From Leucoraja ocellata (lineage: Eukaryota): DNA of 64,000 nt. The position numbers and the translations under genes are program-made. The notes below the pieces were generated by a model. It was not told where the DNA came from. It did not search any database and saw nothing but the letters and a program-made list of their open reading frames with translations. Position 1 is the first letter of the stretch, and each line of letters opens with the position of its first letter. The stretch covers positions 1-64,000 of the forward strand of contig JAWMAR010002394.1 of assembly GCA_036785375.1 (NCBI GenBank). Reading direction: 5' to 3'. Shown here piece after piece: positions 4,586 to 48,715 of the stretch.

Positions 4586-4614
4586 TACTCTGAAATACAT
4601 TCAGTTCCATTGAA

Positions 4615-7308: not shown

Positions 7309-7309
7309 A

Positions 7310-16582: not shown

Positions 16583-19500
16583 GAAACATAGAAACATAGA
16601 AATTAGGTGCAGGAGTAGGCCATTCGGCCCTTCGAGCCTGCACCGCCATTTAATATGATCATGGCTGATCATCCAACTCAGTATCCCGTACCTGCCTTTT
16701 CTCCATACCCTCTGATCCCCTTGGCCACAAGGGCCACATCTAACTCCCTCTTAAATATAGCCAATGAACTGGCCTCAACTACCCTCTGTGGCAGAGAGTT
16801 CCAGAGATTCACCACTCTCTGTGTGAAAAAAGTTCTCCTCATCTCGGTTTTAAAGGATTTCCCCCTTATCCTTAAGCTGTGACCCCTTGTCCTGGACTTC
16901 CCCAACATCGGAAACAATCTTCCTGCATCTAGCCTGTCCAACCCCTTAAGAATTTTGTAAGTTTCTATAAGATCCCCTCTCAATCTCCTAAACTCTAGAG
17001 AGTATAAACCAAGTCTATCCAGTCTTTCTTTATAAGACAGTCCTGACATCCCAGGAATCAGTCTGGTGAAACTTCTCTGCACTCCCTCTATGGCAATAAT
17101 GTCCTTCCTCAGATTTGGAGACCAAAACTGCACGCAATACTCCAGGTGTGGTCTCACCAAGACCCTATAGAACTGCAGTAGAACCTCCCTGCTCCTATAC
17201 TCAAATCCTCTTGCTATGAAAGCCAACATGCCATTCGCTTTCTTTACTGCCTGCTGCACCTGCATGCCTACCTTCAATGACTGGTGTACCATGACACCCA
17301 GGTCTCGCTGCATCTCCCCCTTTCCCAATCGGCCACCGTTTAGATAATAATCTGCTTTCCCGTTTTTGCCACCAAAATGGATAACCTCACATTTATCCAC
17401 ATTAAACTGCATCTGCCAAACATTTGCCCACTCACCCAGCCTATCCAAGTCACCTTGCAGTCTCCTAGCATCCTCCTCACACCTAACACTGCCCCCCAGC
17501 TTAGTGTCATCCGCAAACTTGGAGATATTGCCTTCAATTCCCTCATCCAGATCATTAATATATATTGTAAATAGCTGGGGTCCCAGTACTGAGCCTTGCG
17601 GTACCCCACTAGTCACTGCCTGCCATTGTGAAAAGGACCCGTTTACTCCTACTCTTTGCTTCCTGTTTGCCAGCCAGTTCTCTATCCACATCAATACTGA
17701 ACCCCCAATGCCATGTGCTTTAAGTTTGTATACTAATCTCTTATGTGGGACCTTGTCGAAAGCCTTCTGGAAGTCCAGATACACCACATCCACTGGTTCT
17801 CCCCTATCCACGCTACTAGTTACATCCTCGAAAAATTCTATAAGATTCGTCAGACATGATTTACCTTTCGTAAATCCATGCTGACTTTGTCCAATGATTT
17901 CACCACTTTCTAAATGTGCTGCTATCCCATCTTTAATAACTGACTCTAGCAGTTTCCCCACTACCGATGTTAGGCTAACTGGTCTGTAATTCCCCGTTTT
18001 CTCTCTCCCTCCCTTCTTAAAAAATGGGGTTACGTTTGCTACCCGCCAATCCTCTGGAACTACTCCAGAATCTAAGGAGTTTTGAAATATTATTACTAAT
18101 GCATCCACTATTTCTGGAGCTACTTCCTTAAGTACTCTGGGATGCAGCCTATCTGGCCCTGGGGATTTATCGGCCTTTAATCCATTCAATTTACCCAACA
18201 CCACTTCCCGACTAACCTGGATTTCACTCAATTCCTCCACCTCATTTGACCCCGCGGGCCCCTGCTATTTCCGGCAGATCATTTATGTCTTCCTTAGTGA
18301 AGACGGAACCAAAGTAGTTATTCAATTGGTCCGCCATATCCTGGTTCCCCATGATCAACTCACCTGTTTCTGACTGCAAGGGACCTACATTTGTTTTAAC
18401 TAATCTCTTTCTTTTCACATATCTATAAAAACTTTTGCAGTCAGATTTTATGTTCACTGCCAGTTTTCTTTCATAATCCATTTTTCCTTTTCTAATTAAG
18501 CCCTTCGTCCTCCTCTGCTGGTCTCTGAATTTCTCCCAGTCCTCCGGTATGCTGCTTTTTCTGGCTAGTTTGTACGCATCATCCTTTGCTTTGATACTAT
18601 CCCTGATTTCCCTTGTTATCCATGGATGCACTACCTTCCCTGATTTATTCTTTTGCCAAACTGGGATGAACAATTTTTGTAGTTCATCCATGCAGTCTTT
18701 AAATGCCTTCCATTGCATATCCACCGTCAACCCTTTTAGAATTAATTGCCAGTCAATCTTGGCCAATTCACGTCTTATACCCTCAAAGTTACCTTTCTTT
18801 AAGTTCAAAACCATTGTTTCTGAATTAACAATGTCACTCTCCATCCTAATGAAGAACTCAACCATATTATGGTCACTCTTGCCCAAGGGGCCACACACAA
18901 CAAGACTACTAACTAACCCTTCCTCATTACTCAATACCCAGTCTAAAATAGCCAGCTCTCTCGTTGGTTCCTCTACATGTTGATTTAGATAACTATCCCG
19001 TATACATTCCAAGAAATCCTCTTCCTCAGCACCCCTGCCAGTTTGATTCACCCAATCTATATGTAGATTGAAGTCACCCATTATAACTGCTTTGCCTTTG
19101 TCGCAAGCATTTCTAATTTCCTGTTTGATGCCATCCCCAACTTCACTACTACTGTTAGGTGGCCTGTACACAACACCCACCAGCGTTTTCTGCCCCTTAT
19201 TGTTTCGCAGCTCTACCCATACCGATTCCACATCCTCCAAACTAATGTCCTTCCTTTCCATTGCGTTAATCTCCTCTCTAACCAGCAACACTACCCCACC
19301 TCCTTTTCCTTTCTCTCTATCCCTCCTGAATATTGAATATCCCGGGATGTTCAGCTCCCAGCCTTGGTCACCCTGGAGCCATGTCTCCGTGATCCCAACT
19401 ATATCATAATCATTAATGGCTATCTGCACGTTCAACTCATCCACCTTATTACGAATACTCCTTGCATTGAGACACAAAGCCTTCAGGCTTGTTTTTACAA

Positions 19501-19671
19501 CGCTCTTACCCCTTATACAATTATGTTGAAAAGTGGCCCTTTTTGATTTTTGCCCTGGTTTTGTCTGCCTGCCACTTTTACTTTTCACCTTGCTACCTAT
19601 TGCTTCTACCTTCATTTTACACCCCCCTGCCCCTCTGCTCTTGTACCCATCCCCCTGCCACATTAGTTTAA
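16583..19671 (-). mobile_element. Young CR1 LINE, complete ORF2 with one frameshift (~18250), lacks ORF1
   Basis: ORFs 18242-19663 (APE) and 16678-18240 (RT); (TTTCTATG)n tail on the element strand; TSD ATGCTTA at 16576-16582 and 19709-19715. Nearly identical to 59405-62480. Confidence 0.95.
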
Positions 19672-22056
19672 ATCCTCCCTTATTTTATGATATATTATCA
19701 TATATTATATGCTTATTTTCATTGACTGATGAACAAGGACCCCCCAGATCTGGTTATACTTCCCCTTTTCCAAAATTGACACCATTCAGATAATAACCTG
19801 CCTTCCTGTTCTCGCCACCAATGTGGATAACCTCACATTTATCCATATTAAACTGACCTGCCATGCATCTGCCCACTCCCCCAACCTGCCCAAGTCACCC
19901 TGCATCATCATAGCATCCTCCTCACAGTTCACAGAGCCAATCAGCTTTGTGTCATCTGTAAATGTGTTAATGCTACTTTGAATCCCTTCATCTAAAGCAT
20001 TGATGTATATTGTAAATAGCTACAGTCAACATTTTCCCCAGAGATGCTGCCTGACCCGCTGAGTTACTCCAGCTTTTCGTATCAGCTTTTTCGGACATGG
20101 ACTGATGGATCTCCCGGTTGCAAACCATTTTAACTCTCCTTCCCATTCCCACACCGACCCCCTCTGCCCTGGGTCCCCATTGCCTGAGCGAGGCCATTGG
20201 GGAAACGGAACTTGATAGTCCATCTGGACAGCTTAGAACCCAATATTTTCCAATGTCAGGTAAATCATCTGTAACCCCCTCCCTCCCTTCCCCCACTCTT
20301 CCATGTGCCAAAGCTGGATATGCACCCATTTCCCTTGCCCGCCCCTTCCGCCTTTCTTCCTTCCTCTGGTTCCGCAATCATATTATCCATTCACACCTCT
20401 AATTCCCTCATGGAATGCCTAATTGTATCAACTTCCCTTACCCTTTCACGCTGCGAGTTTCAGATCCATGTGACACACTATTGCACCTGTATACGATTTG
20501 TATAGATTGTATCATGTGTGGTGGAGAGGTTCACGTGTCGCATGAACACTCATATAATATTTAAACATACACAGTGTAATAGACCATAGACAATAGGTGC
20601 AGGAGGAGGCCATTCGGCCCTTCGAGCCAGCACCGCCATTTAATGTGATCATGACTGATCATCCCCAATCAGTATCCCGTTCCTGCCTTCTCACCATATC
20701 CTCTGACTCCGCTATCTTTAAGAGCCCTATCTAGCTCTCTCCTGAAAGTATCCAGAGAACCGGACTACACCGCCCTCTGAGGCAGAGAGTTCCACAGACT
20801 CACAACTCTCTATGTGAAGAAGTGTTTCCTCATCACCGTTCTAAATGTCTTATTCTTAATATTAATATTAGTAACAAAGCGATGGCTGCCAAGTGAAGTC
20901 TAGCTCTGTTGTCCAGATCAGCGTTGATTGTTCGGCCCAGAACTTCCCACATCGACCCCTCTGCCCTGAGTCTCCTCCATTGCCTGAGTGAGGCCATTGG
21001 AGAAACTGGACCTCATTCTCCATCTCGGTAGCTTAGAACCCGATATTGAACTGTGAATTTTCTAATGTCAGATCACGCCAGTTCAGGCGACAGTTCGAGC
21101 TCGACAAACGAATCTTCGACACCAAGGTGTCTCGGCCACAAGATGGCGCCACAATGGTGTGATTTGACAGAGATTGTTACAGGTTGTAATAATAGTCCAA
21201 TAATTACACTTTGTTAATAGGATCTTGTTCATGTTCTTTATATAATGACAACAATTTATCGCTGAATGATGTGCGCTGGAAAGTTATTAAAAGTTCTGCT
21301 GTATCCGAAACTGTAATGAGTCTCTTCTGTTACACGGATGTCCATTCTACCGGTAAATACACGTATGTGTCTCATAAGGTCATAAGGACATGTGATAGGC
21401 GCAGAATTAGGCCATTTCGTCCATCAAGTCTACTCCACCATTCAATCATGGCTTATCTATATCTCCCTCCTAACCCCATTCCCCTGCCTTCTCCCCATTC
21501 CTCTAACACCTGTACTAATCAATAATCTATCTATTTTTGCCTTACAAATATCCACTGATTTGACATCCACAACCTTCTGTGGCAAATAATTCCACAGATT
21601 CACCACCCTCTGACTAAATAAATTCATCCCCATCTCCTTCCGTAAAGAACCTCCTTTAATTCAAAGGCTATGACCTCGAGTCCTAGACTCTCTAATTAGT
21701 GGAATAATCCTCTCCACATCCACTCTATCCAAGCCTTTCACTATTCAGTAAATTTCAATGAGATATCCTCTCATCCTTCTAAATTCCTGCTGTTACAGGC
21801 CCAGTGCCGTCAAACGCTCATCATATGTTAACCCACTCAATACTGGGATCATTCTTGTAAATCTCCTCTGGGCCCTCTCCAGAGCCAGCACATCCTTCCT
21901 CAGATATTGGTCTTGTAGAATCCTACAGCTCCTCTCCTTGGCGTTCACTGCAACCCGATCTCAGATAAAACATTTCCAATCTCCGCAATGTGTTAACAAA
22001 TAATCTGAAATAGTGTTTGAAATTAACCCAAGGAATATACACAAGTAAAGAAACGC

Positions 22057-28435: not shown

Positions 28436-29089
28436 ACAGGGTGGAAGTAGAACCATGAGAGCAGCGGATGGCTCATTATCGCCCCCATCTTACTTATAGA
28501 CCTGCCAATGAGTGGATTATTTGCACGCAAAGAGTTACAAGGATTTGTCATATTTGAGGCAGCTAATGCCCTGTTTCTTCCGGAATAGCGGCCCAGCTTG
28601 TTCCTCCTGAATGGATTTCACAATGTAGCACCCACAATGTTATAACTCCGCCCCGTCCATAGTGCCGGTGGAACCAAACGGGTCAGACGGCATCTCCGGA
28701 GGTCAAAACAATGAACCGCAGGTGCTGGTTAATGCACAAGGGGACATAACGTGATGGAGTAACTTAACAGGTCAGGCAGCGCCTCTGGAGATGGGAACGA
28801 GGAACTGCAATGCTGGTTGATGCACAAGAAAGAGGACTTAATGTGCTGGAGTAACTCCACCGGTCAGGCAGCGTCTCTGGAGGTGGGAACAAGGAACTGC
28901 AGAGCCTGGTGGATGCACAACAGAACAAAAAGTACTGGAATAGATCAGCGCGTCAAGAAGCATCTCTGGAGAACATGGACAGGCGACGTTTCGGGTCTGG
29001 ATCTCTCTTCAGACGGATTTCACATTTCTTCCGCAGATGCTGCCTGACCTGTTTTTGTGTTTGTTTCCGCCTCAGGTAGTCGTTCAAAG

Positions 29090-29127
29090 ATGCAGTGGAG
29101 TGTGGTCGCTTGGTCCGTTCTGCTATT
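29090..29127 (+). CDS. Signal-peptide exon of receptor gene B (runs into N-gap)
   Basis: Acceptor ttgtttccgcctcAG at 29074-29075; aagATG at 29090; MQWSVVAWSVLL hydrophobic leader ~800 bp upstream of the V exon. Donor presumably in gap 29128-29317. Confidence 0.7.
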
Positions 29128-29897
29128 NNNNNNNNNNNNNNNNNNNNNNNNNNNNNNNNNNNNNNNNNNNNNNNNNNNNNNNNNNNNNNNNNNNNNNNNN
29201 NNNNNNNNNNNNNNNNNNNNNNNNNNNNNNNNNNNNNNNNNNNNNNNNNNNNNNNNNNNNNNNNNNNNNNNNNNNNNNNNNNNNNNNNNNNNNNNNNNNN
29301 NNNNNNNNNNNNNNNNNCATTATCGCCCCCCTGGTTTATTCTGTCAATCATTTAGACCCCGGGGTTCAAAGTGGGATGTTTTGATGTTGCGAACTGTAGT
29401 GGTGTTATATAAATAGCAAGAAAGATTCTTCAAGAAGACAGCATGACACAGATCAATTAGAAAATGGGCGACGTGTTAGTGAACGGAACTCAACTTTGGC
29501 AAAGGCGAGCCCCACGTTAATTAGTCCACACCACGACGTTATCCCACTTTCCCATCAACTCACAACACATCAGGAGACATTTACAGAGGATTATTAACCG
29601 ACCAACCTGCACGTCTTTGGGATGTGGGTGGGAACCGGCGCACCCGGAGAAAACCCGCGCGGTCCCTGTGAGAACGTGCAAACTCCACACGAACAGATAG
29701 CACGCGGGGTCAGGATCGAACCCGGTTGTCTCACGATATTTAAAAGGCGTCTCGCCAAGCACTTGAAACGCTGAAACATAGAAAGGCTATGATCCTAACG
29801 CGAGTAAATGGGATTGTGTAGATAGGTGTAATGGATGGCATTGACGGGGTGGGCCGAAAGGCCCGCGCCCGAACTATAAGATTATTTCTGGTTTCAG

Positions 29898-30221
29898 GTG
29901 CTGTTGGATCCGATGAATCGATCATACAATCACCGAAGCAAATCACAGTTACTGAAGGCGGGACTGTGCGGCTAAACTGTGCAGTTGTTGGCAACACAAT
30001 TGGGGCCATTAGTTGGTACAAAGACGTGGAAACTCGTGCCGTTTCCAACACGAGCGGCGACTATTATGGCCGCGTTCTGAAATATAATTCACCGGGGATT
30101 CTAAAAGAATCCATCGACATCACTGACCTCAACATGAACGAGACAGGAAGGTATTACTGCCGATGGAGTGCTTTCTCAGGTGAAATATATAATGGTCACG
30201 GCACAGATGTCACGGTCACAC
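29898..30221 (+). CDS. Ig V(J)-type domain exon of receptor gene B (NKp30/SIRP-like)
   Basis: Acceptor ttctggtttcAG|GT, phase 1. Reads GAVGSDESIIQSPKQITVTEGGTVRLNCAVVGNTIGAISWYKDVETRAVSNTSGDYYGRVLKYNSPGILKESIDITDLNMNETGRYYCRWSAFSGEIYNGHGTDVTVT, with canonical Cys, Trp, YYC and GxGT. Donor C|GTAAGT. Confidence 0.93.
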
Positions 30222-30279
30222 GTAAGTTTGCAGAACCTTAACTTTATCTTTACGGGGGATAGAGAGAGAGAGAGAGAGG

Positions 30280-30810
30280 ATGCCGGAATTACTTGAAGTG
30301 AGATAAATCAATATTCATACCACTGGGGTGTAAACTGCCCAAACCAAATATGAGATGCTGCTCCTCCAATTTGCATGTAGCCTCACTCTGACAATGCAGG
30401 AGACCGAGGACAGAAAGGTCTGTGTGGGAATGGGAAGGAGAATTAAAGTGTTCAGTAACCGGGAGTTCAGGTTGGTGCAGGCGGTCTGAGCCAAGGTGTT
30501 TAGCGAAACGACCGCCCTGTCTGCGTTTGGTCTCGCCGATGTGTTAGAGTTCACATCTGGAACAACGGATACAGTAGATGAGGTTGGAGGAGCAGCAAGT
30601 GAACCTCTGCCTCACCTGAAAGGACTGTCGGGGTGCCTGGACAGAGTCGATAGATGAATTCAAGGGACCAGTGTTGCATCTCCTGCGGTTGCTGGGGGAA
30701 GGTACCTGGAGAAGGGGTGGTCTGGGTGGGAAGGGATGAGTTGACCAGTTAGTTGAGGAGGGAACGGTCTCTGCGGAGGGAAGCAAAAAGGGGTGGAGAT
30801 GGGAAAATGT
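30280..30810 (-). mobile_element. Penelope-like element fragment
   Basis: ORF 30544-30786 RRRCNT...LIYCIRCSRC; paralogue of 570-1770. Confidence 0.8.
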
Positions 30811-31199
30811 GAGGAACTCCAGATGCTGGTTTAGACCGAAGATAGCTGGAGTAACTCAGCGGGACAGGCAGCATCTCTGGAGAGAAGGAATGGGTGACGT
30901 TTCGGGTGGAGACCCATTCATCATCTTCAGCATCTTCTGCTTTGATCTGTCTTTTTCACACGTCACGTGCTCTTTGTACCCTTCCATATCTCTAGTCTTC
31001 CTCTCACAAGACTCTCAGTCTGGAGAGAAGTCCCATCTTCAGACACAACCAAACTCACCGCACCCGTAGCAAAGAGCACGTGTCCCCAGGTGGGGAGGGC
31101 AGACCCTGGACACGTGCTCTTTGTACGGGTGACGTTTCGGGTTGTGTCTGAAGAGGGGACCCTTCTTTAGGCTGAGAGTCAGGAGAGAGGGATATGGAA

Positions 31200-31765
31200 G
31201 GCCCTAGTGAGACCACACCTGGAGTAATGTGTGCAGTTTTGGTCCCCTCATTTGAAGAAGGACATTCTTGCTATTGAGGGAGTGCAGCGTAAGTTTACAA
31301 GGTTAATTCCCGGGATGGCGGGACTGTCATATGTTGAGAAAATGGAGCGGCTGTGCTCGTATAGTCTGGAATTTCGAACGATGAGAGGGTATCGTATTGA
31401 AACATGTAAGATCATTAAGGGTTTCGACACGCTAGAGGCAGGAAACATGTTCCCGATGTTGGGGGGGGGGGGGGGGGGGGGGGTCCAAAACCAGGGGCCA
31501 CACAGTTTAAGAATAAGGGGTAAGCCATTTAGAACTGAGATGAGGAAACACGTTTTCACATAGAGAGTTGTGAGTCTGTGGAATTTTCTGCCTCAGAGGG
31601 CGGTGGATGCAGGTTCTCTGGATACTTTCAAGAGAGAGCTAGATAAGGCTCTTAAATATAGCGGAGTTAGGGGATATGGGGAGAAGGCAGGAACGGGGAT
31701 GTCGGTGCTGGCTCGTAGGACCGAATGGCCTACTCCTACACCTATTGTTTATTGTCTATTGTCTA
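31200..31765 (+). mobile_element. CR1 LINE 3' fragment
   Basis: ORF 31231-31563 RT C-terminus. Confidence 0.85.
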
Positions 31766-32310
31766 TGGGACAACGAGCATGTGAAGTGTGAAAACGACAG
31801 ATCAATGCAGAGGATACCAGGACGATGATGTTGGCTGAGGGGAAGGTGACAAGGGGGCATGCAATCCATACAGTTTATCAAGGGGGGGGGGGGCAGTGAA
31901 ACGTGGGGGAACTAGGATGGGAGCGACAGAGAGAGCGGGGATGCAAGAGTTATTTGGAATTAGAGCAGTCAATATTCATACCGCTGGGGTGTAACACTCC
32001 AGAGACGTACAGGTGTGTAGGTTAATCGGCTTGGTGTAAATGTAAATTGTCCCTAGTGTGTGTAGGATGGTGTCAGTGTGAGGGGATCGCTGGTCGGCAC
32101 GGACCCGGTGGGCCGAAGGGCCTGTTTCCGCGCTGTATCTCTAAACTAAAGCTGAACAAACAAAAAACACCCCGATGCCTTCTCTCCATAACACCCGACA
32201 CCTGTACTGATCATGAATCAATCAATCTCCGACTTAAAACATGTATAGATTGGCTTGGCCTGTACATCACATGTTGCTGTGCCTTTTACTGTATTTTTGT
32301 TTCTCAACAG

Positions 32311-32436
32311 CGCCTGTTCCGAGCGGCAAGGGTGGAACTTATAACATTCCGCTTGTGTGTGGACTCTCGGGTGTGGCGTTGCTCGGGATGGTACTGATTC
32401 TCATCATTTACCTGCGACGCCGCGGTCGATCTCCAG
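32311..32436 (+). CDS. Stalk + uncharged transmembrane exon of gene B
   Basis: Acceptor ttttgtttctcaacAG; 126 bp, phase 1-1. Reads PPVPSGKGGTYNIPLVCGLSGVALLGMVLILIIYLRRRGRSP with a basic stop-transfer segment. Donor CAG|GTAACA. Confidence 0.88.
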
Positions 32437-32629
32437 GTAACAACATCAAGTCAAGTCAAGTTTATTTGTCACATACAAGATGCGCAGTGAAATGAAAGTG
32501 GTGGATTGTGGAAAACAACAGCACAACAGAACAGAATAGAACAGAACCAGTTGTTACATTTTAGGGGATCCATTAAAAAAAAGACACAACACAACTGTAA
32601 ATTAGTTAATTAGACCCTCGTGAGGTCAG

Positions 32630-32925
32630 CGTTTACAGTCCTGAAGGCCTGTGGGATGAAACTCCGTCTCTGGATCTGCACCTGCTGGTGTATAGTTCCT
32701 GCAGGGGGGAGAGTATAGTTCCCATGGTGCGTTCGGCCGAACGCACTACTCTCTGCAGAGCCTTCCTGTCCTGGGCAGAGCTGTTCACAACCCAGATTGT
32801 GATGTTACCGGACAAGATGCTTTCTACAGCCCCAGAATAGAAGCACTGAAGGATCCTCAGAGAGACTCTGAAATTCAGCTGCCTGTGGTGTTAAAGGCGC
32901 TGCCTTGCCTTGCTCACCAGTGCTG
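32630..32925 (-). mobile_element. Rex1/Babar-like LINE fragment
   Basis: SGNITIW..NSSAQDRKALQRVVRSAE. Related fragment at 34385-34700 (LSGCITAWFGNSSIQDRK). Confidence 0.65.
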
Positions 32926-34947
32926 TATGGAAGCAATGTCCTCTCTCCTTGGTAGGCGAACGCAAGCGAGAACTCAGAAGGAATTCCTCGGACGATTAGG
33001 TCTCCTGGGCTCTAAAGGTCCTGTCCATGTGTTAGTTTAGTTTATTTTGGAGATACAGCGCGGAAACAGGCCCTTCGGCCCAGCGACTCCGCACCGACCA
33101 GCGACGCCTGCACCTCCTCCAACCTCGTCTGCTGCATCCGCTGTTCCAGGTGCAAACTTGGTCCAAGCTGAACACCTCCGCTCAGCCAGTGTTAACCAAC
33201 CTGATCGCCCTGTTGCTCAGCGCTTCAACTCCCCCTCCCATTCCCACACTGACCTTTTGTGTCCTGGGCCTCCTCTATTGTCAGAGTGAGGCCCAGCGCA
33301 AATTGGAGGAACAACACCTCATATTTCTCTTGGGTAGTTTACACCCCATGGTATGAACATTGACTTCTCTAATTTTAGACAGTCCTTGTTTTCTCCCTCC
33401 CCCTCCCCTTCCCAGTTCTCCCGCAGCCCACTGTCTCCGCCTACTTCCTTTCGTTTTCCCGCCCCCATCCTACCACCCCCCCCCCCCCCTAGCCCGACAT
33501 CAGTCTGAAGAAGCATCTCGACCCGAAACGCCGCCTGTTCCTTCTCTCCATAGCTGCTGCCTCACCCGCTGAGTTTCACCAGCATTTCTTGTCCACCTTC
33601 GATTGTTCCAGCATCTTCAGTTCTTTCTTAGACAACTGACCTACAGACCTGTAGATCTTTGGAGTGTGGGAGGAAACCGAAGATCTCGAGGAAACCCCAC
33701 GCGGGTCACGGGGAGCACGTACAAACTCCGTGTCAGACAGCACCCGTAGCCGGGATCGAACCCGGGTCTCCAGCGCTCCAGAGATGCTGCCTGACACTCT
33801 GTTATTCTAGCATTTTGTGCTTTCTTCAAAAAAACTAAATGCATTGCACAGGTTTTGGAAATTATTTCGTGCTAATCAGAAGCGAGGAAGATTCTTGTTC
33901 ATGCATGCAAAATAGCAGCAAGGTCTTCGCCTATTTATTGGTCCCTAAAACTATCCCAGGAAGCTTCTGACAAGGGAATACGAGGGTGGTCATGTTCCGA
34001 ATGTGGAGGGAGAAACATAACACGGGGGATTATTAAATGTGCAGCAAATACAAGTTTATTATCTCAATGTGTGGGAAGGAACTGGAGAAAGTGGTTGAGA
34101 CACAAAATGCTGGAGTAACTCAGCGGGACAGGCAGCATCTCTGGAGGGAAGGAACGGATGACGTTTCGGGTCGAGACTCATCATCAGACTGAGTGTCAGG
34201 GGAGAGGGAGATACAGAGATAAGAAAATATAAGGAGTGAGAACGAGAACGAGATACCTTTCCCTTGATCTCCACCCCTTTTGATATCTCGTTCTCACACC
34301 TTACACTTCCTTATCTCTGTATCTCGCTCAAGTCAAGTCAAGTCAAGTCAAGTCAAGAGAGTTTATTGTCATGTACCCCAGATAGGACAATGAAATTCTT
34401 GCTTGGGACTAGGGTGCGAGTGGTCTTGCCGAGGCAGCGTGAGGTATAAATGGAGTCAATAGGAAGGAGGTTGGTTCGTGTGATGGTCTGGGCTTCGTCC
34501 ACAATTAAATGCCATTCTTTGCGGTCTTGGATGGAGCTGTTCCCAAACCAAGCTGTGATGCATCCTGATAAAAATGCTTTCCATGGTGCATCTGTAGAAC
34601 TTGGTGAGAGTTGTAGCAGACTCGCCAAAATTCCTAAGGCTTCCAAGGAAGTAGAGGCGTTGGTGTCCCGACGAAATGTCTGGAGACATGCGGCCAAACG
34701 TGAGATTCATCATTGCTGAAAACATCAGCTTGTTTCGGTGCTGTGTGAGTCTATATTAAACACAGAATTGTACAGAGAAAATATAATTTGTAACAGCAAG
34801 GTTATGTTAATGAAGATTAAAGTTATGCTAATGAGCGAACTATATTCTCATTAGCCACATCCTCTATTGGATGAAATCGAATTTTATTATCGGTAGTTAT
34901 TTTGTTCCGGGGCTTGAAATAAGTAACTTGTTTATAATGTATTACAG

Positions 34948-34979
34948 ATAAAGGAACCGGAACAGAAGATGAGGCTACG
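34948..34979 (+). CDS. 32-bp cytoplasmic micro-exon of gene B
   Basis: Acceptor tgtattacAG, donor ACG|GTATGT. Phase 1 to 0 exactly bridges the TM exon and last exon; DKGTGTEDEAT. Confidence 0.7.
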
Positions 34980-35059
34980 GTATGTAGTTAATTAACCTTT
35001 AGATGTTCCCTCTGACTTGATCAGTGGTTATTTGCCATTTTGTGTTTCTTTGTGAATTA

Positions 35060-35750
35060 AATAGACAAAAGGTACAGGATGAGGCCATTCGGAATTTCGA
35101 GCCAGTACCGCCATTCAATGTGATCGTGGCTGATCATCCCAATCAGTACCCCGTTCCTGCCTTCTCCCCATATCCCCTGACTCCGCTGTCTTTAAGAGCC
35201 CTATCCAGCTCTCTCTTGAAAGTATCCAGAGAACCGGCCTCTGAGGCAGAGAATGCCACAGATTCACAACTCTCTGTGAGAATACGTGTTTCCTCGTCTC
35301 CGTTCTAAATGGCCGACCCCTTATTCTTAAACTGTGGTCCCTGGTTCTGGACTCCCCCAACATCGGGAACATGCTTTCCTGCCTCTAGCGTGTCCAAACC
35401 ATTAACAATCTTATATGTTTCAATAAGATCCCCTCTCATCCTTCTAAACTCCAGAGTATACAAGCCCAGCCGCTCCATTCTCTCAGGATAAGACAGTCCC
35501 GCCATCCCGGGAATGAACCTTGTAAAAGTCTGTGGAATATTCTGGCTCAGATGCCGGTGGAGGCCGGTTCTCTGGAAACTTTCAAGAGAGAGCTAGATAG
35601 TGCTCTTGAAGATAGCGGAGTCTGGGGATATGGGGAGAAGGCAGGAACGGGGTACTGATTGTGGATGATCAGCCGTGATCACATTGAATGGCGGTGCTGG
35701 CTCGAGGGACCGAATGGCCTACTCCTGCACCTATTGTCTATTGTCTATGC
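35060..35750. mobile_element. Two CR1 3' fragments in opposite orientation
   Basis: Minus-strand RT C-terminus 35060-35525 abutting a plus-strand 3' end 35528-35750. Confidence 0.75.
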
Positions 35751-36794
35751 ATACGCCTCTTAAACGCCATTGACGTAATGCCTCCACAACCACCGATGAC
35801 AATTTTGTTCCAGACCCCAACCAACATCCGTNNNNNNNNNNNNNNNNNNNNNNNNNNNNNNNNNNNNNNNNNNNNNNNNNNNNNNNNNNNNNNNNNNNNN
35901 NNNNNNNNNNNNNNNNNNNNNNNNNNNNNNNNNNNNNNNNNNNNNNNNNNNNNNNNNNNNNNNNNNNNNNNNNNNNNNNNNNNNNNNNNNNNNNNNNNNN
36001 NNNNNNNNNNNNNNNNNNNNNNNNNNNNNNNNNNNNNNNNNNNNNNNNNNNNNNNNNNNNNNNNNNNNCCCCCCTAGTGTTCGCATTTCGACCCAATCAA
36101 TGTTGAATTAATTTATTTTCACGGTGACCAAACTAGAATAGGACACTTCCCTTCAGGCTATTGCTTCGGGATAAATATTGTATTTTCAATTAAAGAGATT
36201 TTCAAGCGAGTTGCTGGAAAATGAATCATTTATCGCAAGCATTTGCTCAGCCCCGGTATAATCTGCTCAACATTCTATGGTGTTACTAACATTGGAATCA
36301 ACAGGTGACGGTGGATATATTAATATCCTAACTTAATGACGAACCTAAAACAATGAAGTTGCTTTCATCCCGCGGCTAGATTCGCAGCGCAGCTGTTATA
36401 CATGTTAGGTTGCTGAAACCGCTTCATGAAAGAGGCCCATTGACCAGAAACTAACACAAAGCCCGAAACCTCACATCGTTCTGAATTTCCGAAGATGGAT
36501 AAGTTACTGGACAATTTCCAATCTTGTGTAGGTTTCAAATCTTGTAACAAATGACTTGTGACATTCCAGGAACTAACACAAAGCTCATACCTCAAAGCAA
36601 TAGACAATAGACAATAGGTGCAGGAGTAGGCCATTCGGCCCTTCGAGCCAGCACCGCCATTCAATGTGATCATGGCTGATCATCCACAATCAGTATCCCG
36701 TTCCTGCCTTCTCCCCATATCCCCTGACTCCGTTGTGAACTTTAGAAGCGGGATAAGTTACCGGACAATTTCAATCGTATGTAGGTTTCAAATA

Positions 36795-37265
36795 GAGTCA
36801 TAGAGTGATACAGCGTGGAAACAGGCCCTTCGGCCCAACTTGCCCACACCGGCCAACAATGTCCCAGTTACACTAGTCCCACCTGCCTGCACTTGGTCCA
36901 TATCCCTCCAAACCTGTCCTATCCATGTACATGTCTAACTGTTTCTTAAATGTTGGGATAGGCCCAGCCTCAACCACCTCCTCTGGCAGCTTGTTCCATT
37001 CACCCACCATCCTCTGTGTCGAAAAGTTACTCCTCAGATTCCTATTTAATCTTTTCCCCTTCACCTTGAACAACCGTCCTCTGGTCCTCGGTTCCCCTAC
37101 TCTGGGCAAGAGACTCTGTGCATCTACCCGATCTATTCCTCTCGTGGTTTTGTACACCTCTATAAGATCACCCCCTCATCCTACTACGCTCCAAGGAATA
37201 GAGACCCAGCCTGCTCAACCTCTCCCTGTAGCTCACACCCTCTAGTCCTGGAAACATCCGTGTAA
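36795..37265 (-). mobile_element. CR1-like LINE 3' fragment (different subfamily)
   Basis: ORF 36873-37157 RGIDRVDAQSLLPR...EGYGPSAGRWD. Confidence 0.8.
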
Positions 37266-37673
37266 AGTCTTGCAACAAATAATCCAGAATCGTAAGGGCC
37301 TGTCCCACTTTACGAGGCAATTCACGAATTCTCCCGAGTTTGAATTCTCCCGAGTTTTCCCCTTAATTCAAACTCGCAGACTGTTCGTAACGGGTCCGTA
37401 GATATATCGTAGCACCTCGTTATGCCAGACGCAGGTCCTCGGGCATAAGTCGGGACGTTTACGGGACGCCTGATATAAAATGTCCACGAGTAAAGAAATA
37501 GTCGGGAGGATGCCCCGAGCACCTACGGCAGGTTTACGATATATCTACGTACTCCTACGGCCTCCTACGGACCCGTTACGATCTTTGGGCTTTAGAAGAG
37601 AGACGAGATGCTGGACAATTTCCAAACTTGTTTAGATTTCAAATGTTGTAACAAATATTCTGTTACATTCCAG

Positions 37674-37959
37674 GAAAATGACACATCGAAAAATATAATC
37701 TATGCTGACCTGAATATCAAAAAGTTGAACAGTAATCACCGTTCGGGTCAAGATGCCAGAGGGAATGGGGCTCGGGTCAAAAACCCCGGCGGGGCCGGAC
37801 CTCTGTCCGAGGCAGGTGGAAGGGAAGACCCGGTTCAGAAATCCCGCTCAGACGGACAATCCAGCATCGAACAAGCAGAAGAAGGATCGCATAAGAAATG
37901 AACAACAGGTTGTGTACGCAACCGTGAATGCTCAGCGTCCACCAGTTCCCCAACACTGA
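37674..37959 (+). CDS. Terminal cytoplasmic exon of gene B with ITIM(s); apparent +1 frameshift between motifs
   Basis: Acceptor gttacattccAG|GAA, phase 0. ENDTSKNIIYADLNIKK (ITIM 37695-37712), stop ending at 37901. The +1 frame, open 37729-37959, ends RNEQQVVYATVNAQRPPVPQH* (ITIM 37909-37926). Confidence 0.82.
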
Positions 37960-38743
37960 ACATTGGGAATGAGAGGACAATACTAGGCGGCGGCGTTCTC
38001 TTAGATTAGTTCAGTAACGCGGAAACAGGCCCTTCGGCCACCCGAGTCCGCGCCGACCAGCGCTACTAGCCCTATCCTACACACATAAGGGACAATTTAC
38101 AATTTTTGCCGAAGCCAAATTAAACCACGAGCCCGAACGTCTTTGGAGTGTGGGAGGAAACCGGAGCGCCCGGGGAAAACCCACGCGGGTCACGCGGAGA
38201 ACCTAAAAACTCCGTACAGACCGCACCCGTAGTCAGGATGGAACCCGCTAGCCTTGTTCCATGTACCAGCCAATTAAATATAACATTTCCAAGTTTGCGG
38301 ATGACACAAAGCTGGGTGGCAGTGTGAACTGTGGAACAGGATGCTATGAGGCTGCAGGGTGACTTGGGTAGGTTGGGTGAGTGGGTAATGCATGGCAGAT
38401 GCAGTAAAATGTCGGTTATAAATGTAGCATTGATGCCGTATAAAGGGCCGAATGGCCTACTCCTGCACCTATATTCTATGTTGCTATGTTTTATAATTAA
38501 TTCCAACAGCTTTGGAGCAGTCTAATAGTTATTTCTGGAAGACTTTCATTTTAATAAGACACGAGCGCCATTGCATTCGATGAAATTTACTAACAAATGA
38601 CCATTCGTGTAAATCTCGATGGATATATTACCTATGCTACTTGTGTGAGGGATTTTGAAGGACAGAGAGATATTATGACATAAGTATGGTTGTTATACAC
38701 AAACCAATTCAGTGCTGCCTGTGGTTTAAACATTCGATATTTC

Positions 38744-43807: not shown

Positions 43808-45342
43808 NNNNNNNNNNNNNNNNNNNNNNNNNNNNNNNNNNNNNNNNNNNNNNNNNNNNNNNNNNNNNNNNNNNNNNNNNNNNNNNNNNNNNNNNNNNNN
43901 NNNNNNNNNNNNNNNNNNNNNNNNNNNNNNNNNNNNNNNNNNNNNNNNNNNNNNNNNNNNNNNNNNNNNNNNNNNNNNNNNNNNNNNNNNNNNNNNNNNN
44001 NNNNNNNGTGGTTGTTCAGGATAATAGATCGTCTGATCACAGCTGGACAAGCGTGTGGCATCATGTTTCAGCAGTGTGTCTCAGTCTTTGATCGCTTGAT
44101 CTAACAGAGACGGAGCCATGATGTTGATGAATGAAGATATATTGGCAACATAATCCAGTGTGATGGGATTATCACCCTCGTCAGTAAACTGTGGTCTGAG
44201 CGGCTAATACCAGCATTGGGTTGCCAAGTGAAAGACTCCATATGTTGAGTCCACGTGATGGGGTGATGTGTGGCCCTCAACCAAACCACCTGGTCACAAC
44301 ATTCCTACATTGACAGAAACACCACTCTGGTCAACTCAAACATAGCCCCTCATTGAATGATCCAGCATGGAAACAGGCCCTTCGGCCCAACTAGCCCAAA
44401 ACGGCCAACATGCCCCATCTACACTTCATCTAAATATAGAATGCTGGAGTGACTCAGCGGGTCAGGCAGCATCTGTGGAGAACATGGATAGGTGACGTTT
44501 CACAGAGTGCTGGAGTAACTCAGCGGGTCAGCAGCATCTGTGGAGAACATGGATAGGTGACGTTTCACAGAGTGCTGGAGTAACTCAGCGGGTCAGGCAG
44601 CATCTGTGGAGCTAAGGAAATAGGCAACGTTTCGGGTCGAAACCCTTCCGGGTTTCGGCCCGAAACGTTGCCTATTTCCTGAAGGGTTTTGGCCCGAAAC
44701 GTTGCTATTTCCTTCGCTCCATAGATGCTGCTGCACCATAACTCAGCAGGTCAGGCAACATCTGTGGAGAACATGGATAGGTGACGTTTCACAGAGTGCT
44801 GGAGTAACTCAGCGGGTCAGGCAGCATCTGCTGGAGAGAATGGATGGTGACGTTTCGGGTGGAGACCCATTCATCATCTTGAGCATCTTCTGCTTTGATC
44901 TGTCTTTTTCACACCTCGCGTGCTCTTTGTACCCTTCCATATCTCTAGTCTTCCTCTCCCCAGACTCTCAGTCTGCGGAGAGGAAGTTGAAGCGCCCAAC
45001 TCCAGTACCAAGTCTGTTGAGCTTCACCCACGCTCCTCTGGGGAGGTCAGACCATGGACAGGTTTGATCTGGTGAACAGATGGAGCTGTGTAATGGAGAT
45101 CAGGTTGCCTTCCACTCCTGTGACCACTTGGTGGCTATCCAGTATGCTTTTGTCTCCGTTGGCTGGATGGATGCTAGGAGTTGTTTAGGGATGTTAATTG
45201 CCTGTCAGGACGCGCGTCCTTGGGTTGAGAGAGGAAGCAAGAACGCCCAGGGGAAACGCAGGCAATATAATGGAGAACGTGCAAACTCCACACAGACAGA
45301 CAGCACCCGGGGCCAGCGCCGAGACTATAATATGTTTTCAAG

Positions 45343-45440
45343 TTGATGAATCGATCATACAATCACCGAATCAGATCATAGTTACTGAAGGCGGGACTGT
45401 GCCGCTAAACTGTGCATTTGTTAGCAACACAGTCAGTTAA
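45343..45440 (+). pseudogene. Truncated V-exon fragment, copy 2
   Basis: DESIIQSPNQIIVTEGGTVPLNCAFVSNTVS*, then the same CR1 junction as at ~2603. Confidence 0.85.
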
Positions 45441-46236
45441 ATTGGGCACTGAGATGAGGAAAGGCTTTTTCACCCAGAGAGTTGTGAATCTATGAAATTC
45501 TCAGCGTCAGAGGGCGGTGGAGGCAGGTTCTCTGGATGCTTTCAAGAGAGAATTAGATAGAACTCTTAAAGATAGCGGAGTCAATGGATATGGGGAGAAG
45601 GCAGGAACGGGGCACTGATTGTGAATGATCAACCATGATCACAGTGAATGGCGGTGCTGGCTTGAAGGGCCGAATGGCCGCCTCCTGCACCTATTGTCTA
45701 TTGTCTATTGCCCACACCGGCCAACAATGTCCCAGCTACACTAGTCCCACCTGCCTGCGCCTGGTCAATATCCCACAAAACCTGTCTATCCGTGTACCTG
45801 TCCCACTGCTTCTTAAACGATGGGATAGTCCCAGCCTCAAAGACCTCTGGCAGCTTCCTCCATACACCGACTATTCTTTCCATCGAAGCGCAATCCAGTT
45901 CCTCCTTAATTCACATGCACGCTCCGCTCACTCCGACTCCTCCATATATCAGGGGTAAATTACACCTGTTCATTACCTATCAGGACGCACGTCTTTGGGA
46001 TGAGAGAGGAAGCAGTAACGTCCAGGGGAAACACATGGAATAACACGGAGAACGTGCAAACTCCACACCGGCATTCAGCATTGAGGCCGGGATACTGGCC
46101 CTCAGAGGCAGCAGCTGCTTCGGCTATTCCCTCAAGCAAACAACGTTGAGATAAAAGGAACAGCAGATGCGGGGTTACAAACAAAAAGACACAAAGTGCT
46201 GGAGTAACTCAGCGGGCAAGGCAGCATCTGTGGAGA

Positions 46237-46420
46237 AGGTTACACAAAAAAGCTGGAGAAACTCAGCGGGTGCAGCAGCATTTATGGAGCGAAGGAAATA
46301 GGCAACGTTTCGGGCCGAAACCCCAGTCTGAAGAAGGGTTTCGGCCCGAAACGTTGCCTATTTCCTTCGCTCCATAGATGCTGCTGCACCCGCTGAGTTT
46401 CTCCAGCTTTTTTGTGTAAC
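46237..46420. repeat. Long inverted repeat of a Penelope terminal segment containing a hammerhead motif
   Basis: ~85-bp arms (ggttacacaaaaagctggagaaactcag...ctccagcttttttgtgtaacc) around CTGAAGAAGGGTTTCGGCCCGAAACGTT. Confidence 0.8.
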
Positions 46421-47157
46421 CTTCGATTCTCCAGCATCTGCAGTTCCTTCTTAAACTCTGTGGAGAACATGGATAGGTGACATTGTGGAATGCTGAAGAA
46501 GGGTGCCGACCTGAAATGTCGCCTATACACGGGGTTTGGAGATTGCAAACCTTCACGTGGTCCGCCCTGTTTCGACGAATGCAATCAACCTGGTGTGCAC
46601 AATCAAATAAGATCAAATAGAACAAGTTGTGCAACAACTTTGGGCAATGCACGCCATACGCAAGAAGAGGAATCCTATCCAAGTTCTCCACAGATGCTGC
46701 CTGACCCACTGAGTTACTCCAGCTCTCTGTGGGACGTCACCTATCCATGTTCTCCACAGATGCTGCCTGACCCACTGAGCTACTCCAGCACTCTGTGAAA
46801 CGTCACCTATCCATGTTCTCCACAGATGCTGCCTGACCCGCTGAGTTACTCCAGCACTCTGTGAAACGTCACCTATCCATGTTCTCCACAGATGCTGCCT
46901 GACCTGTTGACTTACTCCAACACTGTGAAACGTCACCTATCCATGTTATCCACAGATGCTGCCTGACCTGCTGAGTTACTCCAGCACTTTGAATTCTATG
47001 CAAGATTCCCACATCTGTTGTTACTGTTCAGGCAACTGAAATGTGCGAATTGGTCTACGTTTACAATGACAGTGGGAACATCTCGGTGTATAAGAATGGA
47101 AGGAGACAGAAAGAACCTGGGAAAGTAATTGGTGAACTTGATGTTTTATTCCTTCAG

Positions 47158-47315
47158 GTCGGATCCCTGTAGAAAGCCCTGCATGGGGATTACGTTGGCA
47201 GCTGGTGGTAATGGGAGTGAAACTTGCAACGTTCATTGTGATCAACGTTATAATAGTTTTCATCATCCGCTCATGGGAGTCTTGTGGATTTGCCAGCCCG
47301 ACAAAAGAAGCCTAA
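47158..47315 (+). CDS. Third copy of TM-Lys exon
   Basis: Acceptor tattccttcAG 47156-47157; RIPVESPAWGLRWQLVVMGVKLATFIVINVIIVFIIRSWESCGFASPTKEA*; donor GTAAGA at 47331. Confidence 0.7.
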
Positions 47316-48529
47316 CAGGCTGGTCAAACGGTAAGAGGATTGCCAGCGCCATGTGTTAGTTGTATTAGCAGCTGAGGTCACTGGACAATGGTGCATTTTA
47401 TTGTCACCTGCGAGGTGCTACCACAGTGAAAATATTTCCTTACAATCTAAACTAAACTAAACTAAACTAAACTAAACTAAACTAAACTAAACTAAACTAA
47501 ACTAAACTAAACTAAACTAAAACAAACTTATCTAAATTTAAACAAACGAATCCAAAGCATAACAAACAAAACTAAACTAAACTAAATTAACCTAAACTAA
47601 ACAAAGAAACGAAACTAAAATGAGCTAAACTAAACAGAAATAGTCTAAACGAAACGAAACTTAACTAAACTAAGCTTAACTTAACTTAACTAAACAAAAA
47701 CAAACTTAACTAAACTTAACCAAACCGAACCAAACAACATTAAACGAATCTAAACTAAACTTAAATTAACAACTAAACGAATCTTCAATACATTCAGTTC
47801 CATTGAAATCCCGCACTCCCTTGGTCACGCTCTCATTACACTCCTACCATCAAGTAGAATAAATCTGAGTCTGAAAACCGTGACCACAAGGTTCAAGAAC
47901 AGTTTCTTCCCTGCAACTATCAGGCTCTTGAACACCACAGAAGACTAGGCTCAACTATGAACATGAATGGACTTCCTTGTGTTGCACCAAGGATCTTGTA
48001 TTTTCGTGTTTGCACCAGATACACATTTATTGTTGATTTTGTTTATTATATTTTGTCTAAGTGTGTTGTATGTACAGCCCTGTTACGCTGCTGCCAGTAA
48101 GAATTCCATTGTACAGTTGTCGGTACAACAAACTTAGATAAAATATAATCAACAAAACCAACAACAAATTTGTAACTAGTGCAAACCCTCTTGAATCTTG
48201 TAACGTAGACTTACTGCAACATAACAAAGGCGACCTGGCAGGGAAAACTAGACCGAACCTGGCCAGAAATAAGGAGCTCATCCAGGACTTGGATGGTACA
48301 TGGATAGGTGGGTTTAGTGTAGCTGAGACATGTTGGCCGGTGTGGGGAGTGTGGGCCATAAGATCCTGTTTCCACGCTGTATCACTCTATGACTCTATGA
48401 CTAGGAGCTATGTGGACACATACTTGACAAGAACTTTAATAACAATAATATAGTCAATTGTGTTCAATGCTATTAATGTTTTTGTGCCTGTACATGTGGT
48501 ATAATAATATATCTATTTTATTTTCACAG

Positions 48530-48715
48530 ACCATAAGTGTTGAACTCCCTACATATTTGAATCAACTCATCCAACAGATCAAACCATGAAAAGCAAACTC
48601 ATTACTGAATCAACATTAGCTCAGTCAGCTGTGCTGATACTGTTGTGGGCCATTTGGGATAATGTAATTTGTGAAATCTTACACTCATTAAAACTCCACA
48701 TTGCCTTCTTGTTTC
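48530..48715 (+). other. Copy 3 of putative 3'UTR exon
   Basis: AG 48528-48529; ATTAAA 48687-48692. Confidence 0.45.

Follow-up and report, generated by a model that had tools for sequence, protein, structure and literature searches.

The window, a 64,000-nucleotide stretch of DNA from Leucoraja ocellata, reads as carrying a five-exon gene made up of a leader exon, a V-J exon, an exon for an uncharged transmembrane (TM) segment, a 32-nt micro-exon, and a tail exon with tyrosine motifs. Judged by its sequence, it is a genuine immune-receptor gene of a cartilaginous fish, belonging to a family with existing annotations in other rays and sharks. The gene is probably the inhibitory partner in a tandem pair, or cluster, of VJ-type cartilaginous-fish receptors that have a single V domain resembling that of NKp30 (NCR3). 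In such a receptor, the V domain would bind a cell-surface ligand, Src-family kinases would phosphorylate the tyrosines of the ITIMs, and phosphatases of the SHP-1/SHP-2 type would be recruited; these would damp the signals of an activating partner, which may itself signal via an ITAM adaptor bound through the lysine of its TM segment. In combining an extracellular V domain with intracellular tyrosine motifs that recruit SH2 phosphatases, the gene would work on a principle shared with SIRPalpha and PD-1.

Exon structure and closest relatives

All exons, motifs, and repeats located here lie on the forward strand. The leader exon is partial (29090 to 29127): an ATG start, 12 codons, and 2 bases are readable, and the last few bases of the exon fall, together with its donor, in an N gap (29128 to 29317). 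Nine of the 12 leader residues are identical to the signal peptide of the Rhinoraja longicauda protein P0002. The V-J exon (29898 to 30221, phase 1 in and out) is a single open reading frame that runs from the A strand through a Cys/Trp/Cys core to a GxGTxVTV J-like strand. It matches the Pfam V-set domain (E = 2e-10), and its AF2 model has nine strands and a pLDDT of 89.8. The sequence-only reading had proposed a germline-joined VJ-type V domain from the segments IGAISWYKD and NGHGTDVTV; both lie in this one open exon, with NGHGTDVTV ending the domain, and the proposal is borne out. Next come the stalk and TM exon (32311 to 32436), in which an uncharged TM segment (Kyte-Doolittle 19-mer maximum 2.79) is followed by an RRRGR stop-transfer sequence, and the 32-nt micro-exon (34948 to 34979, phase 1 in and 0 out), which supplies D-KGTGTEDEAT with the family's "SPDK" junction. 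The tail exon as read in the assembly (37674 to 37901) has 75 codons and a stop at 37899 to 37901, and its similarity to a skate protein reaches E = 2e-18. Similarities of this strength, here and in the V-J exon, lie well outside what chance would give.

All readable internal splice sites are canonical AG/GT, and the exon phases (1/1, 1/1, 1/0, and 0) are consistent with one transcript. A second N gap (35832 to 36068) lies inside intron 4; in the closest relative, the micro-exon residues run directly into those of the tail exon, and we therefore expect no coding exon in this gap. The earlier proposal that an uncharged TM segment, a micro-exon, and an ITIM-bearing tail follow the V domain is confirmed in this order, and relatives with a matching layout are known.

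The closest relative of the gene is R. longicauda LOC144602684 (P0161, named "uncharacterized protein"). The two share the stalk and TM, the RSPDK junction, and a 10-residue micro-exon segment, which in P0161 reads KGNRTEECDQ and matches the window's micro-exon in length and position. The membrane-proximal segment of P0161 (a DTSKN stretch and the ITIM, through LNI) is identical to that of the focal gene, and the C-terminal QQ(I/V)VYATVN(V/A)QRPP is nearly so. The P0161 gene model is truncated at its N terminus and is missing most of the V domain. For the V-J exon, the closest protein among 1.84 billion representatives is P0002, the product of the neighboring gene LOC144602683, which matches over the whole exon with 73% identity (78 of 107 residues, E = 1.6e-40). 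P0002 has the activating TM that is found in the window in three copies.

Among the best 75 matches to the V exon, eight are single-V elasmobranch relatives. Three of these eight, and in addition two Pristis proteins, are named "natural cytotoxicity triggering receptor 3-like" by NCBI. The inhibitory forms of this family include proteins so named in Pristis (P0158) and Heterodontus (P0075) and unnamed proteins in Hemitrygon (P0024), Hypanus (P0154 and P0063), Mobula (P0155 and P0157), and Narcine (P0021); most of the relatives come from automated gene prediction. Like the focal gene, these forms combine a single VJ-type V domain with an uncharged TM and an (S/T/R)-x-DK junction; their tails carry two or three (I/V)xYxx(L/V) motifs and end in xVYAxV. 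Their V domains are 41 to 54% identical to the focal V domain, their tails are in frame, and the stingray forms have longer CDR1-like loops than the focal gene.

We placed the focal V domain in a tree of 46 V domains, assembled without curated NCR3, NITR, PD-1, TIGIT, or CD28 sequences. It is sister to that of P0002 (support 100/99) within a clade of 16 rows (96/85) that unites activating with inhibitory receptors of elasmobranchs, among them the inhibitory forms above and P0160, and activating and inhibitory V domains pair by species. The frog protein P0043, the sole tetrapod row labeled NCR3, groups with shark multi-V proteins outside the elasmobranch clade. The sequence-only reading had asked whether the V domain clusters with a known inhibitory orthologue. 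In this tree it shows no grouping with a known inhibitory orthologue such as SIRP, PD-1, or TIGIT, and instead groups robustly with annotated elasmobranch "NCR3-like" receptors of both signaling types. For that reason we do not regard the gene as a new type.

Likeness of the V domain to NKp30 and other receptors

Mammalian NKp30 is, like the focal gene, a non-rearranging VJ-type V domain. NKp30 has a basic TM residue and partners with CD3zeta and FcRgamma. When we searched the PDB with a profile built from 16 family sequences, it matched four NKp30 chains (6yjp, 3pv6, 3noi, and 9fww) at E values of 3.8e-19 to 1.7e-18. Human NKp30 scored 72.4 bits in one domain, compared with at most 54.5 bits for the next single-V chains and at most 33.9 bits per antibody V domain. 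The segments W(Y/F)(K/R)D, (Y/F)xGR(V/L), YxC(K/R)VE, and GxGTxxxV align between NKp30 and the family. The NKp30 strings cited in the sequence-only reading are visible in the profile alignment, and the resemblance claimed there stands in that NKp30 is the family's best solved relative by sequence. Identity between NKp30 and the focal V domain is about 23%, and NKp30 is absent from the best 60 PDB matches when the window V sequence alone is the query. The profile comparison points to NKp30 as the nearest characterized V domain for the elasmobranch family.

Searches with the modeled structure do not single out NKp30, which appears tied with all antigen-receptor V domains. Foldseek ranked NKp30 first, though level with VNARs and nanobodies, and VIA-align placed it at rank 42 (Z 14.1, compared with a top Z of 15.2). 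The two receptors also differ in signaling type: NKp30 is activating, whereas the focal receptor joins ITIMs to a TM segment free of charge. The basic TM residue of NKp30 is missing from the focal TM exon, whose TM has no charged residue, but has a counterpart, a Lys, in the three neighboring activating-type exons.

We considered whether the V domain could instead derive from another inhibitory family (SIRP, PD-1/CD28, or TIGIT), and judge this very improbable. SIRPalpha V domains do appear in both PDB sequence searches (29 bits with the single sequence, 52.8 bits with the profile), the relative P0157 is named "TIGIT-like" by NCBI, and Atlas look-alikes at 0.93 to 0.94 include clusters named for PD-1 and TIGIT. 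Against this origin, the family profile scores NKp30 about 18 to 20 bits over SIRPalpha and every other single-V chain, and PD-1 and TIGIT are absent from the best 60 PDB matches with that profile. SIRPs carry extra C1 domains that the focal gene does not have: tblastn detected no additional Ig exon separating the V exon from the TM exon, and in the 46-domain tree the SIRP-like V domains form their own clade (100/100), apart from the focal one.

In the PD-1 gene, leader, V, TM, and short exons precede a final exon that carries the tyrosines, and the sequence-only reading had likened the focal layout to that of PDCD1. The likeness holds for the exon layout, including the micro-exon (32 nt, for a predicted length of about 30 bp), and fails for the motifs. 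The second motif of PD-1 is an ITSM (TxYxxV/I), whereas both window motifs are of the ITIM type, with I or V at position -2; among the relatives, only Heterodontus has T at this position (TVYAAV). With no ITSM among the window motifs, the PD-1 parallel is one of exon layout only. No PD-1 chain is among the best 60 matches in either PDB search. The reading that we favor for the V domain is the NKp30-like one.

The tail exon and its 14-nt deletion

The string NIIYADLNIK, which the sequence-only reading had singled out, is present at the start of the tail exon (from 37674). It contains the membrane-proximal ITIM IIYADL (37695 to 37712), which is identical in P0161 and is the sole tyrosine motif left in frame. 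In a tblastn search, residues 95 to 137 of P0161 map to 37671 to 37835 in frame 3 and residues 143 to 178 map to frame 1 from 37837, with only 1 base left in the window for residues 138 to 142. This equals a 14-nt deletion relative to related genes, sited at 37835/37836, that shifts the frame by +1. P0161 carries three tyrosines in a single frame, with the middle motif VVYSAL, whereas the focal gene keeps a single base of the five codons for VYSAL and has lost this middle motif. The remainder of the tail (37837 to 37959) is open in frame +1; it includes the C-terminal ITIM VVYATV (37909 to 37926), within an ORF spanning 37753 to 37959, and the ancestral stop (37957 to 37959). The earlier description of a two-tyrosine last exon does not hold, since the frame of NIIYADLNIK stops at 37899 to 37901 and VVYATV lies in frame +1; nor would two tyrosines be the design of the tail, the ancestral form having three tyrosine motifs. 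The predicted product retains IIYADL as its single ITIM and terminates 21 residues past the break. Set against the inhibitory form of the family, the TM, the junction, and the first ITIM are present, whereas the tyrosine motifs do not share a single frame, the middle one being deleted and the C-terminal one displaced.

The deletion could reflect a genuine allele that is weakened or dying, a polymorphic variant, or a mistake in the assembly. If it is real, the gene may be a pseudogene, with the family's most conserved signaling motif out of frame and the locus decaying like the truncated V relics nearby. We consider this rather unlikely. The tail does have a frameshift and a premature stop, and in all nine inhibitory-type relatives counted, from rays and a shark (P0161, P0158, P0157, P0155, P0154, P0024, P0021, P0063, and P0075, leaving out the isoforms P0151, P0153, P0156, and P0159), the C-terminal tyrosine is in frame with the membrane-proximal segment. 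The cluster also sheds exons, as two V relics (2504 to 2602 and 45345 to 45434) attest. A search for RNA runs containing the tail exon found none, and the four runs aligned to the window were all contigs; this result carries no weight, because the runs searched included no RNA from this species. On the other hand, the V, TM, and micro-exons and every readable splice site are intact, and one canonical ITIM still reads in frame. Past the break, the displaced frame continues for 41 codons without a premature stop, and its 64% identity to P0161 does not fall below the 51% of the in-frame part; because this remainder is undecayed, the break would be young, polymorphic, or an artifact.

The same lack of decay downstream of the break speaks for an assembly or haplotype artifact, or a rare allele, in which case the normal gene of the species would have three in-frame tyrosine motifs. 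We regard this as a tentative possibility, better than remote. A public contig (run X1, contig record 7) that is 99% identical to the window, with 3 other letters in 313, places 327 letters on the 313 window letters from 37552 to 37864, which is 14 extra. These 14 letters fall somewhere within that interval and match the deletion by size only. A second contig (run X2, record 16) ends at most 4 letters from the site, as at a heterozygous bubble. Against an artifact, a loss of 14 bases is atypical as a consensus error, and the runs are coded, each containing at most 0.52 of the words, and may come from another individual or even another species.

The surrounding cluster

The window holds further members of the family. 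At its start lies the 3' end of the V exon of an upstream paralogue, gene A (1 to 113, cut by the window start), in which 30 of 37 residues are identical to the focal V domain. Downstream of gene A is an activating-type terminal exon with a Lys-bearing TM (4022 to 4179), followed by a second copy (10089 to 10246); both are intact. The third such exon (47158 to 47315) is likewise intact: its acceptor is in phase 1, its TM segment contains Lys and Asn, and its short tail is closed by a TAA stop. It is 75% identical to residues 142 to 196 of P0002. With the V end of gene A and three Lys-TM exons within the window, activating partners with almost the same ectodomain are at hand, and the sequence indicates that the locus is a paired activating/inhibitory cluster.

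The V relic between the focal gene and the third activating exon (45345 to 45434) keeps its first ~30 codons, which are followed by a stop and an inserted repeat. Direct repeats of about 190 nt bracket the inhibitory cassette. The left copy (30845 to 31031) lies in a segment, 30665 to 31031, that is 95.9% identical to 1625 to 1993 of gene A, and the right copy (44798 to 44987) lies in a segment, 44798 to 45316, that is 96.0% identical to 1804 to 2322; gene A has a single copy (1804 to 1993).

This arrangement raises the question of whether one V exon serves two tails, with 29898 to 30221 splicing in one form to the inhibitory cassette and in the other bypassing the cassette to join 47158 to 47315. 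If so, a single gene would yield both an inhibitory and an activating receptor. The V-exon donor and the activating-exon acceptor are both phase 1, the activating exon is intact, and truncation of the V exon that formerly preceded it has left it without a V of its own. We nevertheless hold this to be distinctly unlikely: the activating exon is 17 kb downstream, beyond the terminal exon, and in relatives each form has a gene of its own. The activating and inhibitory V domains of Pristis differ slightly (106 of 114 residues identical), and Rhinoraja has two LOC numbers.

A broader account joins these observations, and we think it improbable as a whole. In it, the focal unit has the order V exon, inhibitory cassette, dead V, and activating exon, and gene A would be a focal-type unit minus the 13.8-kb inhibitory cassette, lost by recombination between the ~190-nt direct repeats, which would set a live V exon beside an activating exon. 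Alternative splicing would still connect the focal V exon to each of the two tails, and the 14-nt deletion would mark a stage in the change of the gene from inhibitory to activating. If this were true, the locus would record how activating and inhibitory receptors arise from one another, and one NKp30-like gene would switch sign. An inhibitory gene standing beside separate activating partners is the reading that we prefer. Among 10 long ORFs scanned elsewhere in the window, 5 were without a family and 5 were of the LINE reverse transcriptase/endonuclease type.

Exon structure of the focal gene and identity of its V domain

We read positions 28500-38500 and translated the pieces, which gave a coherent receptor gene of five exons on the plus strand (29090-37959). 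The leader exon starts with an ATG at 29090 and runs for 12 codons and two bases. A gap of Ns at 29128-29317 interrupts it a few bases short of its expected end, so the leader donor and its continuity with the downstream sequence cannot be read. The V-J exon (29898-30221) and the stalk/transmembrane (TM) exon (32311-32436) are phase 1 at both ends, the 32-nt micro-exon (34948-34979) is entered in phase 1 and left in phase 0, and the tail exon, from 37674, holds NIIYADLNIK. All readable acceptors have a pyrimidine tract and end with AG, and the donors are GTAAGT, GTAACA, and GTATGT. A second gap, 35832-36068, lies within intron 4; because the residues of the micro-exon directly adjoin those of the tail in the closest relative, we would expect no exon there. 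Every string quoted in an earlier sequence-only reading of this DNA was found in the sequence, and the leader, V, TM, micro-exon, and last exon it laid out are present with the phases given here, but the two tyrosines it placed in the last exon do not share one frame. The predicted product begins with a secreted-type leader, and its single V domain carries two N-glycosylation sequons. Its TM segment is uncharged (19-mer hydropathy 2.79), with RRRGR after it, and the cytoplasmic tail bears motifs of the ITIM consensus.

The product of the V-J exon is a V-set domain by Pfam (E 2e-10). We searched 1.84 billion representatives exhaustively with HMMER and found 670 proteins at the threshold of E 0.001 or better; the high scorers were mostly giant multi-Ig proteins, which sum many weak domains. 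The top one-domain match was P0002, the activating Rhinoraja longicauda LOC144602683 (E 1.6e-40, 73% identity); next, with 44-52% identity, came P0021, P0022, P0024, P0026, P0027, P0063, and P0075. These eight proteins come without exception from rays or the horn shark; NCBI names three of them "natural cytotoxicity triggering receptor 3-like" and five "uncharacterized." A word-index protein search, in which 13 of 4379 candidates matched, added members from Pristis, Mobula, and Hypanus, as well as P0161, the inhibitory Rhinoraja longicauda LOC144602684. Neither a tetrapod or nurse-shark NCR3 nor a protein from the window's own genome was found in the word-index searches (these 13 of 4379 candidates; 1 of 1413, the query itself; and 2 of 8000 scored).

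When the family profile was compared with the PDB, four NKp30 chains were the top single-domain entries (E 3.8e-19 to 1.7e-18). The only entries above them were antibody constructs of two to four V domains, with at most 33.9 bits per domain versus 72.4 for NKp30, and the single-V chains that came after NKp30 were VNAR (54.5 bits), TCR alpha (53.5), and SIRPa (52.8). The NKp30 segments quoted in the sequence-only reading are visible in the profile alignment. The likeness to NKp30 proposed there is borne out by the family profile (72.4 bits), but neither a single-sequence search nor the fold singles NKp30 out: it was absent from the best 60 PDB matches of the window V sequence alone, it took first place in Foldseek by a hair only, and VIA-align put it level with nanobodies, VNARs, and TCR/Ig V domains. 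An AlphaFold model of the V domain, built on 16 family sequences, has nine strands and a pLDDT of 89.8; as modeled, the domain shows an antigen-receptor-type V fold and nothing finer. We discarded structure as a discriminator of family, since the fold cannot separate NKp30 from VNAR, VHH, and TCR V domains, and the ESM Atlas also, which gave generic V-set clusters only, PD-1- and TIGIT-named ones among them. We call the V domain NKp30-like at the level of the family profile, short of orthology with tetrapod NCR3.

Activating and inhibitory forms across elasmobranchs

NKp30 is usually presented as an activating receptor and as the only one of the natural cytotoxicity receptors whose conservation extends from sharks to humans. 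We compared 46 V domains, taken from 27 proteins and the window, in a tree that omits proteins longer than 520 residues, the isoforms P0151, P0153, P0156, and P0159, P0161 (29 V residues only), and P0060, P0068, P0090, P0104, P0111, P0113, P0132, P0136, and P0162-P0166. Activating and inhibitory ectodomains pair in this tree by lineage, not by signaling type: the window groups with the Rhinoraja activating form (100/99), Pristis activating with Pristis inhibitory (98/97), and the stingray activating form adjoins the stingray inhibitory one. Pairing of this kind is a signature of paired receptors, which suggests that the elasmobranch clade consists of paired activating and inhibitory receptors. 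By sequence comparison, the focal gene is a member of this clade, which is already in public annotation in at least eight species, partly under NCR3-like names and in both signaling versions. The focal gene and its relatives show that the NKp30-like V domain has paired activating and inhibitory versions in rays and in one shark or more, and that these exchange their ectodomains or evolve them in concert, much like the KIR, Ly49, SIRP, and NITR genes. This fits the idea that VJ-type receptors, as relatives of antigen-receptor V domains, have had paired signaling from early on.

ITIM-bearing NCR3-like models are known from databases for several species, and the point is not new there. A literature search, to which the main shark NCR3 paper was not open, found no description of cytoplasmic tails for the NCR3 genes of sharks. 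The study of the nurse-shark NCR3 family by Kinlein et al. 2021 may already describe ITIM-bearing NCR3-like forms.

In its predicted working the focal gene is like SIRPa and PD-1, but it stands outside both families: C1 domains are lacking, the V domains of SIRPs sit in a clade of their own, and no ITSM of the PD-1 kind is present in the window. It has its type of V domain in common with NKp30 but not the activating TM feature of that receptor. By analogy with NKp30, we take B7H6-like molecules to be the obvious candidate ligands. If the gene works as the ITIM receptors KIR, SIRPa, and PD-1 do, ligand binding would draw the tail to Src-family kinases, the phosphotyrosines would then dock the tandem SH2 domains of SHP-1/SHP-2, and adjacent activating signals would be switched off, most plausibly those of a Lys-TM partner with an ITAM adaptor.

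Reading frame of the tail exon

The frame that holds NIIYADLNIK meets a stop at 37899-37901, and the second tyrosine motif, VVYATV, is in frame +1 (ORF 37753-37959). In this assembly the "two-tyrosine last exon" of the sequence-only reading therefore does not exist as one open frame, IIYADL and VVYATV being in different frames. The closest relative of the inhibitory part is P0161. In tblastn, its residues 30-92 matched the TM exon, residues 95-137 matched 37671-37835 in one frame, and residues 143-178 matched 37837-37944, one frame on. For VYSAL, the five residues that separate the last two stretches, the window has just one base, which amounts to 14 bases lost at 37835/37836. With this loss the middle tyrosine motif is gone and the frame is shifted, so that the last and best conserved motif is untranslated; the assembled product keeps only one canonical ITIM, IIYADL (37695-37712). 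The C-terminal tyrosine motif is in frame in nine of nine inhibitory relatives (P0161, P0158, P0157, P0155, P0154, P0024, P0021, P0063, and P0075), a count that omits the isoforms P0151, P0153, P0156, and P0159.

Contigs from coded public sequencing runs match this region. A 327-letter contig of run X1 aligns with 313 window letters (37552-37864); 3 letters differ and 14 fall in gaps, which agrees with the predicted deletion by size, not by position within 37552-37864. A contig of run X2 has an end within four letters of the deletion site. Because each of the runs listed for the tail exon (37674-37990) has at most 0.52 of its sampled words, none can be taken as the assembled animal. The out-of-frame remainder has stayed open, and its identity to P0161 is 64%, versus 51% for the in-frame part, which argues that the frame break is recent, polymorphic, or an artifact. 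A cryptic intron that restores the frame was rejected, as there is no donor/acceptor pair of usable size between 37830 and 37910. If the deletion is real, the focal copy would be attenuated or on its way out, and with one ITIM left, weaker docking of tandem-SH2 phosphatases would be expected.

Among the public runs matched with the tail exon, none classed as RNA contained it. In run X5, whose kind is only guessed to be RNA, a contig of 155 letters lies on 37672-37781 with 38 letters unplaced; its match ends two bases before the predicted acceptor, and depth is 2 at 34972, within the micro-exon. This is how a micro-exon-to-tail splice would appear, a hint only, with the joint absent from the alignments shown.

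Paralogous exons and a repeat-flanked inhibitory cassette

The window is a receptor cluster, not a lone gene. Positions 1-113 belong to the 3' end of a V exon paralogous to the focal one (gene A), with its counterpart at 30110-30221. Nine of the 37 codons that gene A shares with the focal V exon differ, eight of them nonsynonymously and mostly in the F-G (CDR3-like) loop. The following intron, at 96.4% identity, is more alike than the first 144 aligned bases (exon end and first intron bases), at 93%; the sample is small, but diversifying selection on the F-G loop gives this pattern. Two V relics (2504-2602 and 45345-45434), in which one and the same repeat has inserted at an identical codon and cut the exon short, both lacking the first exon bases at the acceptor, belong to a segmental duplication (1804-9622 / 44798-51986, 94-96% identical). 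Three intact terminal exons of activating type (4022-4179, 10089-10246, and 47158-47315) encode a short tail and a TM segment in which Lys and Asn occur. Their identity to the activating end of P0002 is 74-79%, and their acceptors, all of phase 1, are compatible with the V exon donor. All three end at a common stop, eight codons before the end of P0002.

Self-comparison showed that the DNA downstream of gene A matches 30254-31031 and then jumps to 44798-51986, and that 1804-1993 (~190 bases) has two matches, one at 30845-31031 and one at 44798-44987. The inhibitory TM, micro-exon, and tail exons lie within 13.8 kb flanked by this ~190-nt direct repeat, and gene A has one repeat copy and no inhibitory cassette. 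Since two copies flank the cassette and one is present in gene A, gene A looks like a recombinant that lost the cassette, as by unequal recombination. What the window adds locally is a skate member, a broken tail, and what appears to be a clean case of repeat-mediated loss of an inhibitory cassette; most is to be learned from the repeat-flanked cassette and from the broken tail. In both P0002 and P0161 the V domain is followed by a short segment, (M/I)STAVTVT, whose counterpart in the window straddles the inhibitory TM exon's acceptor. The Rhinoraja activating gene may therefore retain a piece of an inhibitory-type exon.

The remaining sequence of the window is LINE and SINE, and the 10 longest ORFs outside the gene (five LINE reverse transcriptase/endonuclease, five without a family) include no marker gene for synteny. 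Endonuclease and reverse transcriptase ORFs are present in LINE copies at 16678-19663 (minus strand), 58460-62385 (plus), and 14597-15466 (plus), and the ORF at 58460-60673 has a GDSL-esterase-like domain as well. The copies at 16581-19679 and 62482-59398 are 98.6% identical and were therefore recently active. A tandem repeat with an 82-nt period occupies 57673-58208, where 57673-58126 and 57755-58208 give a 100% self-match.
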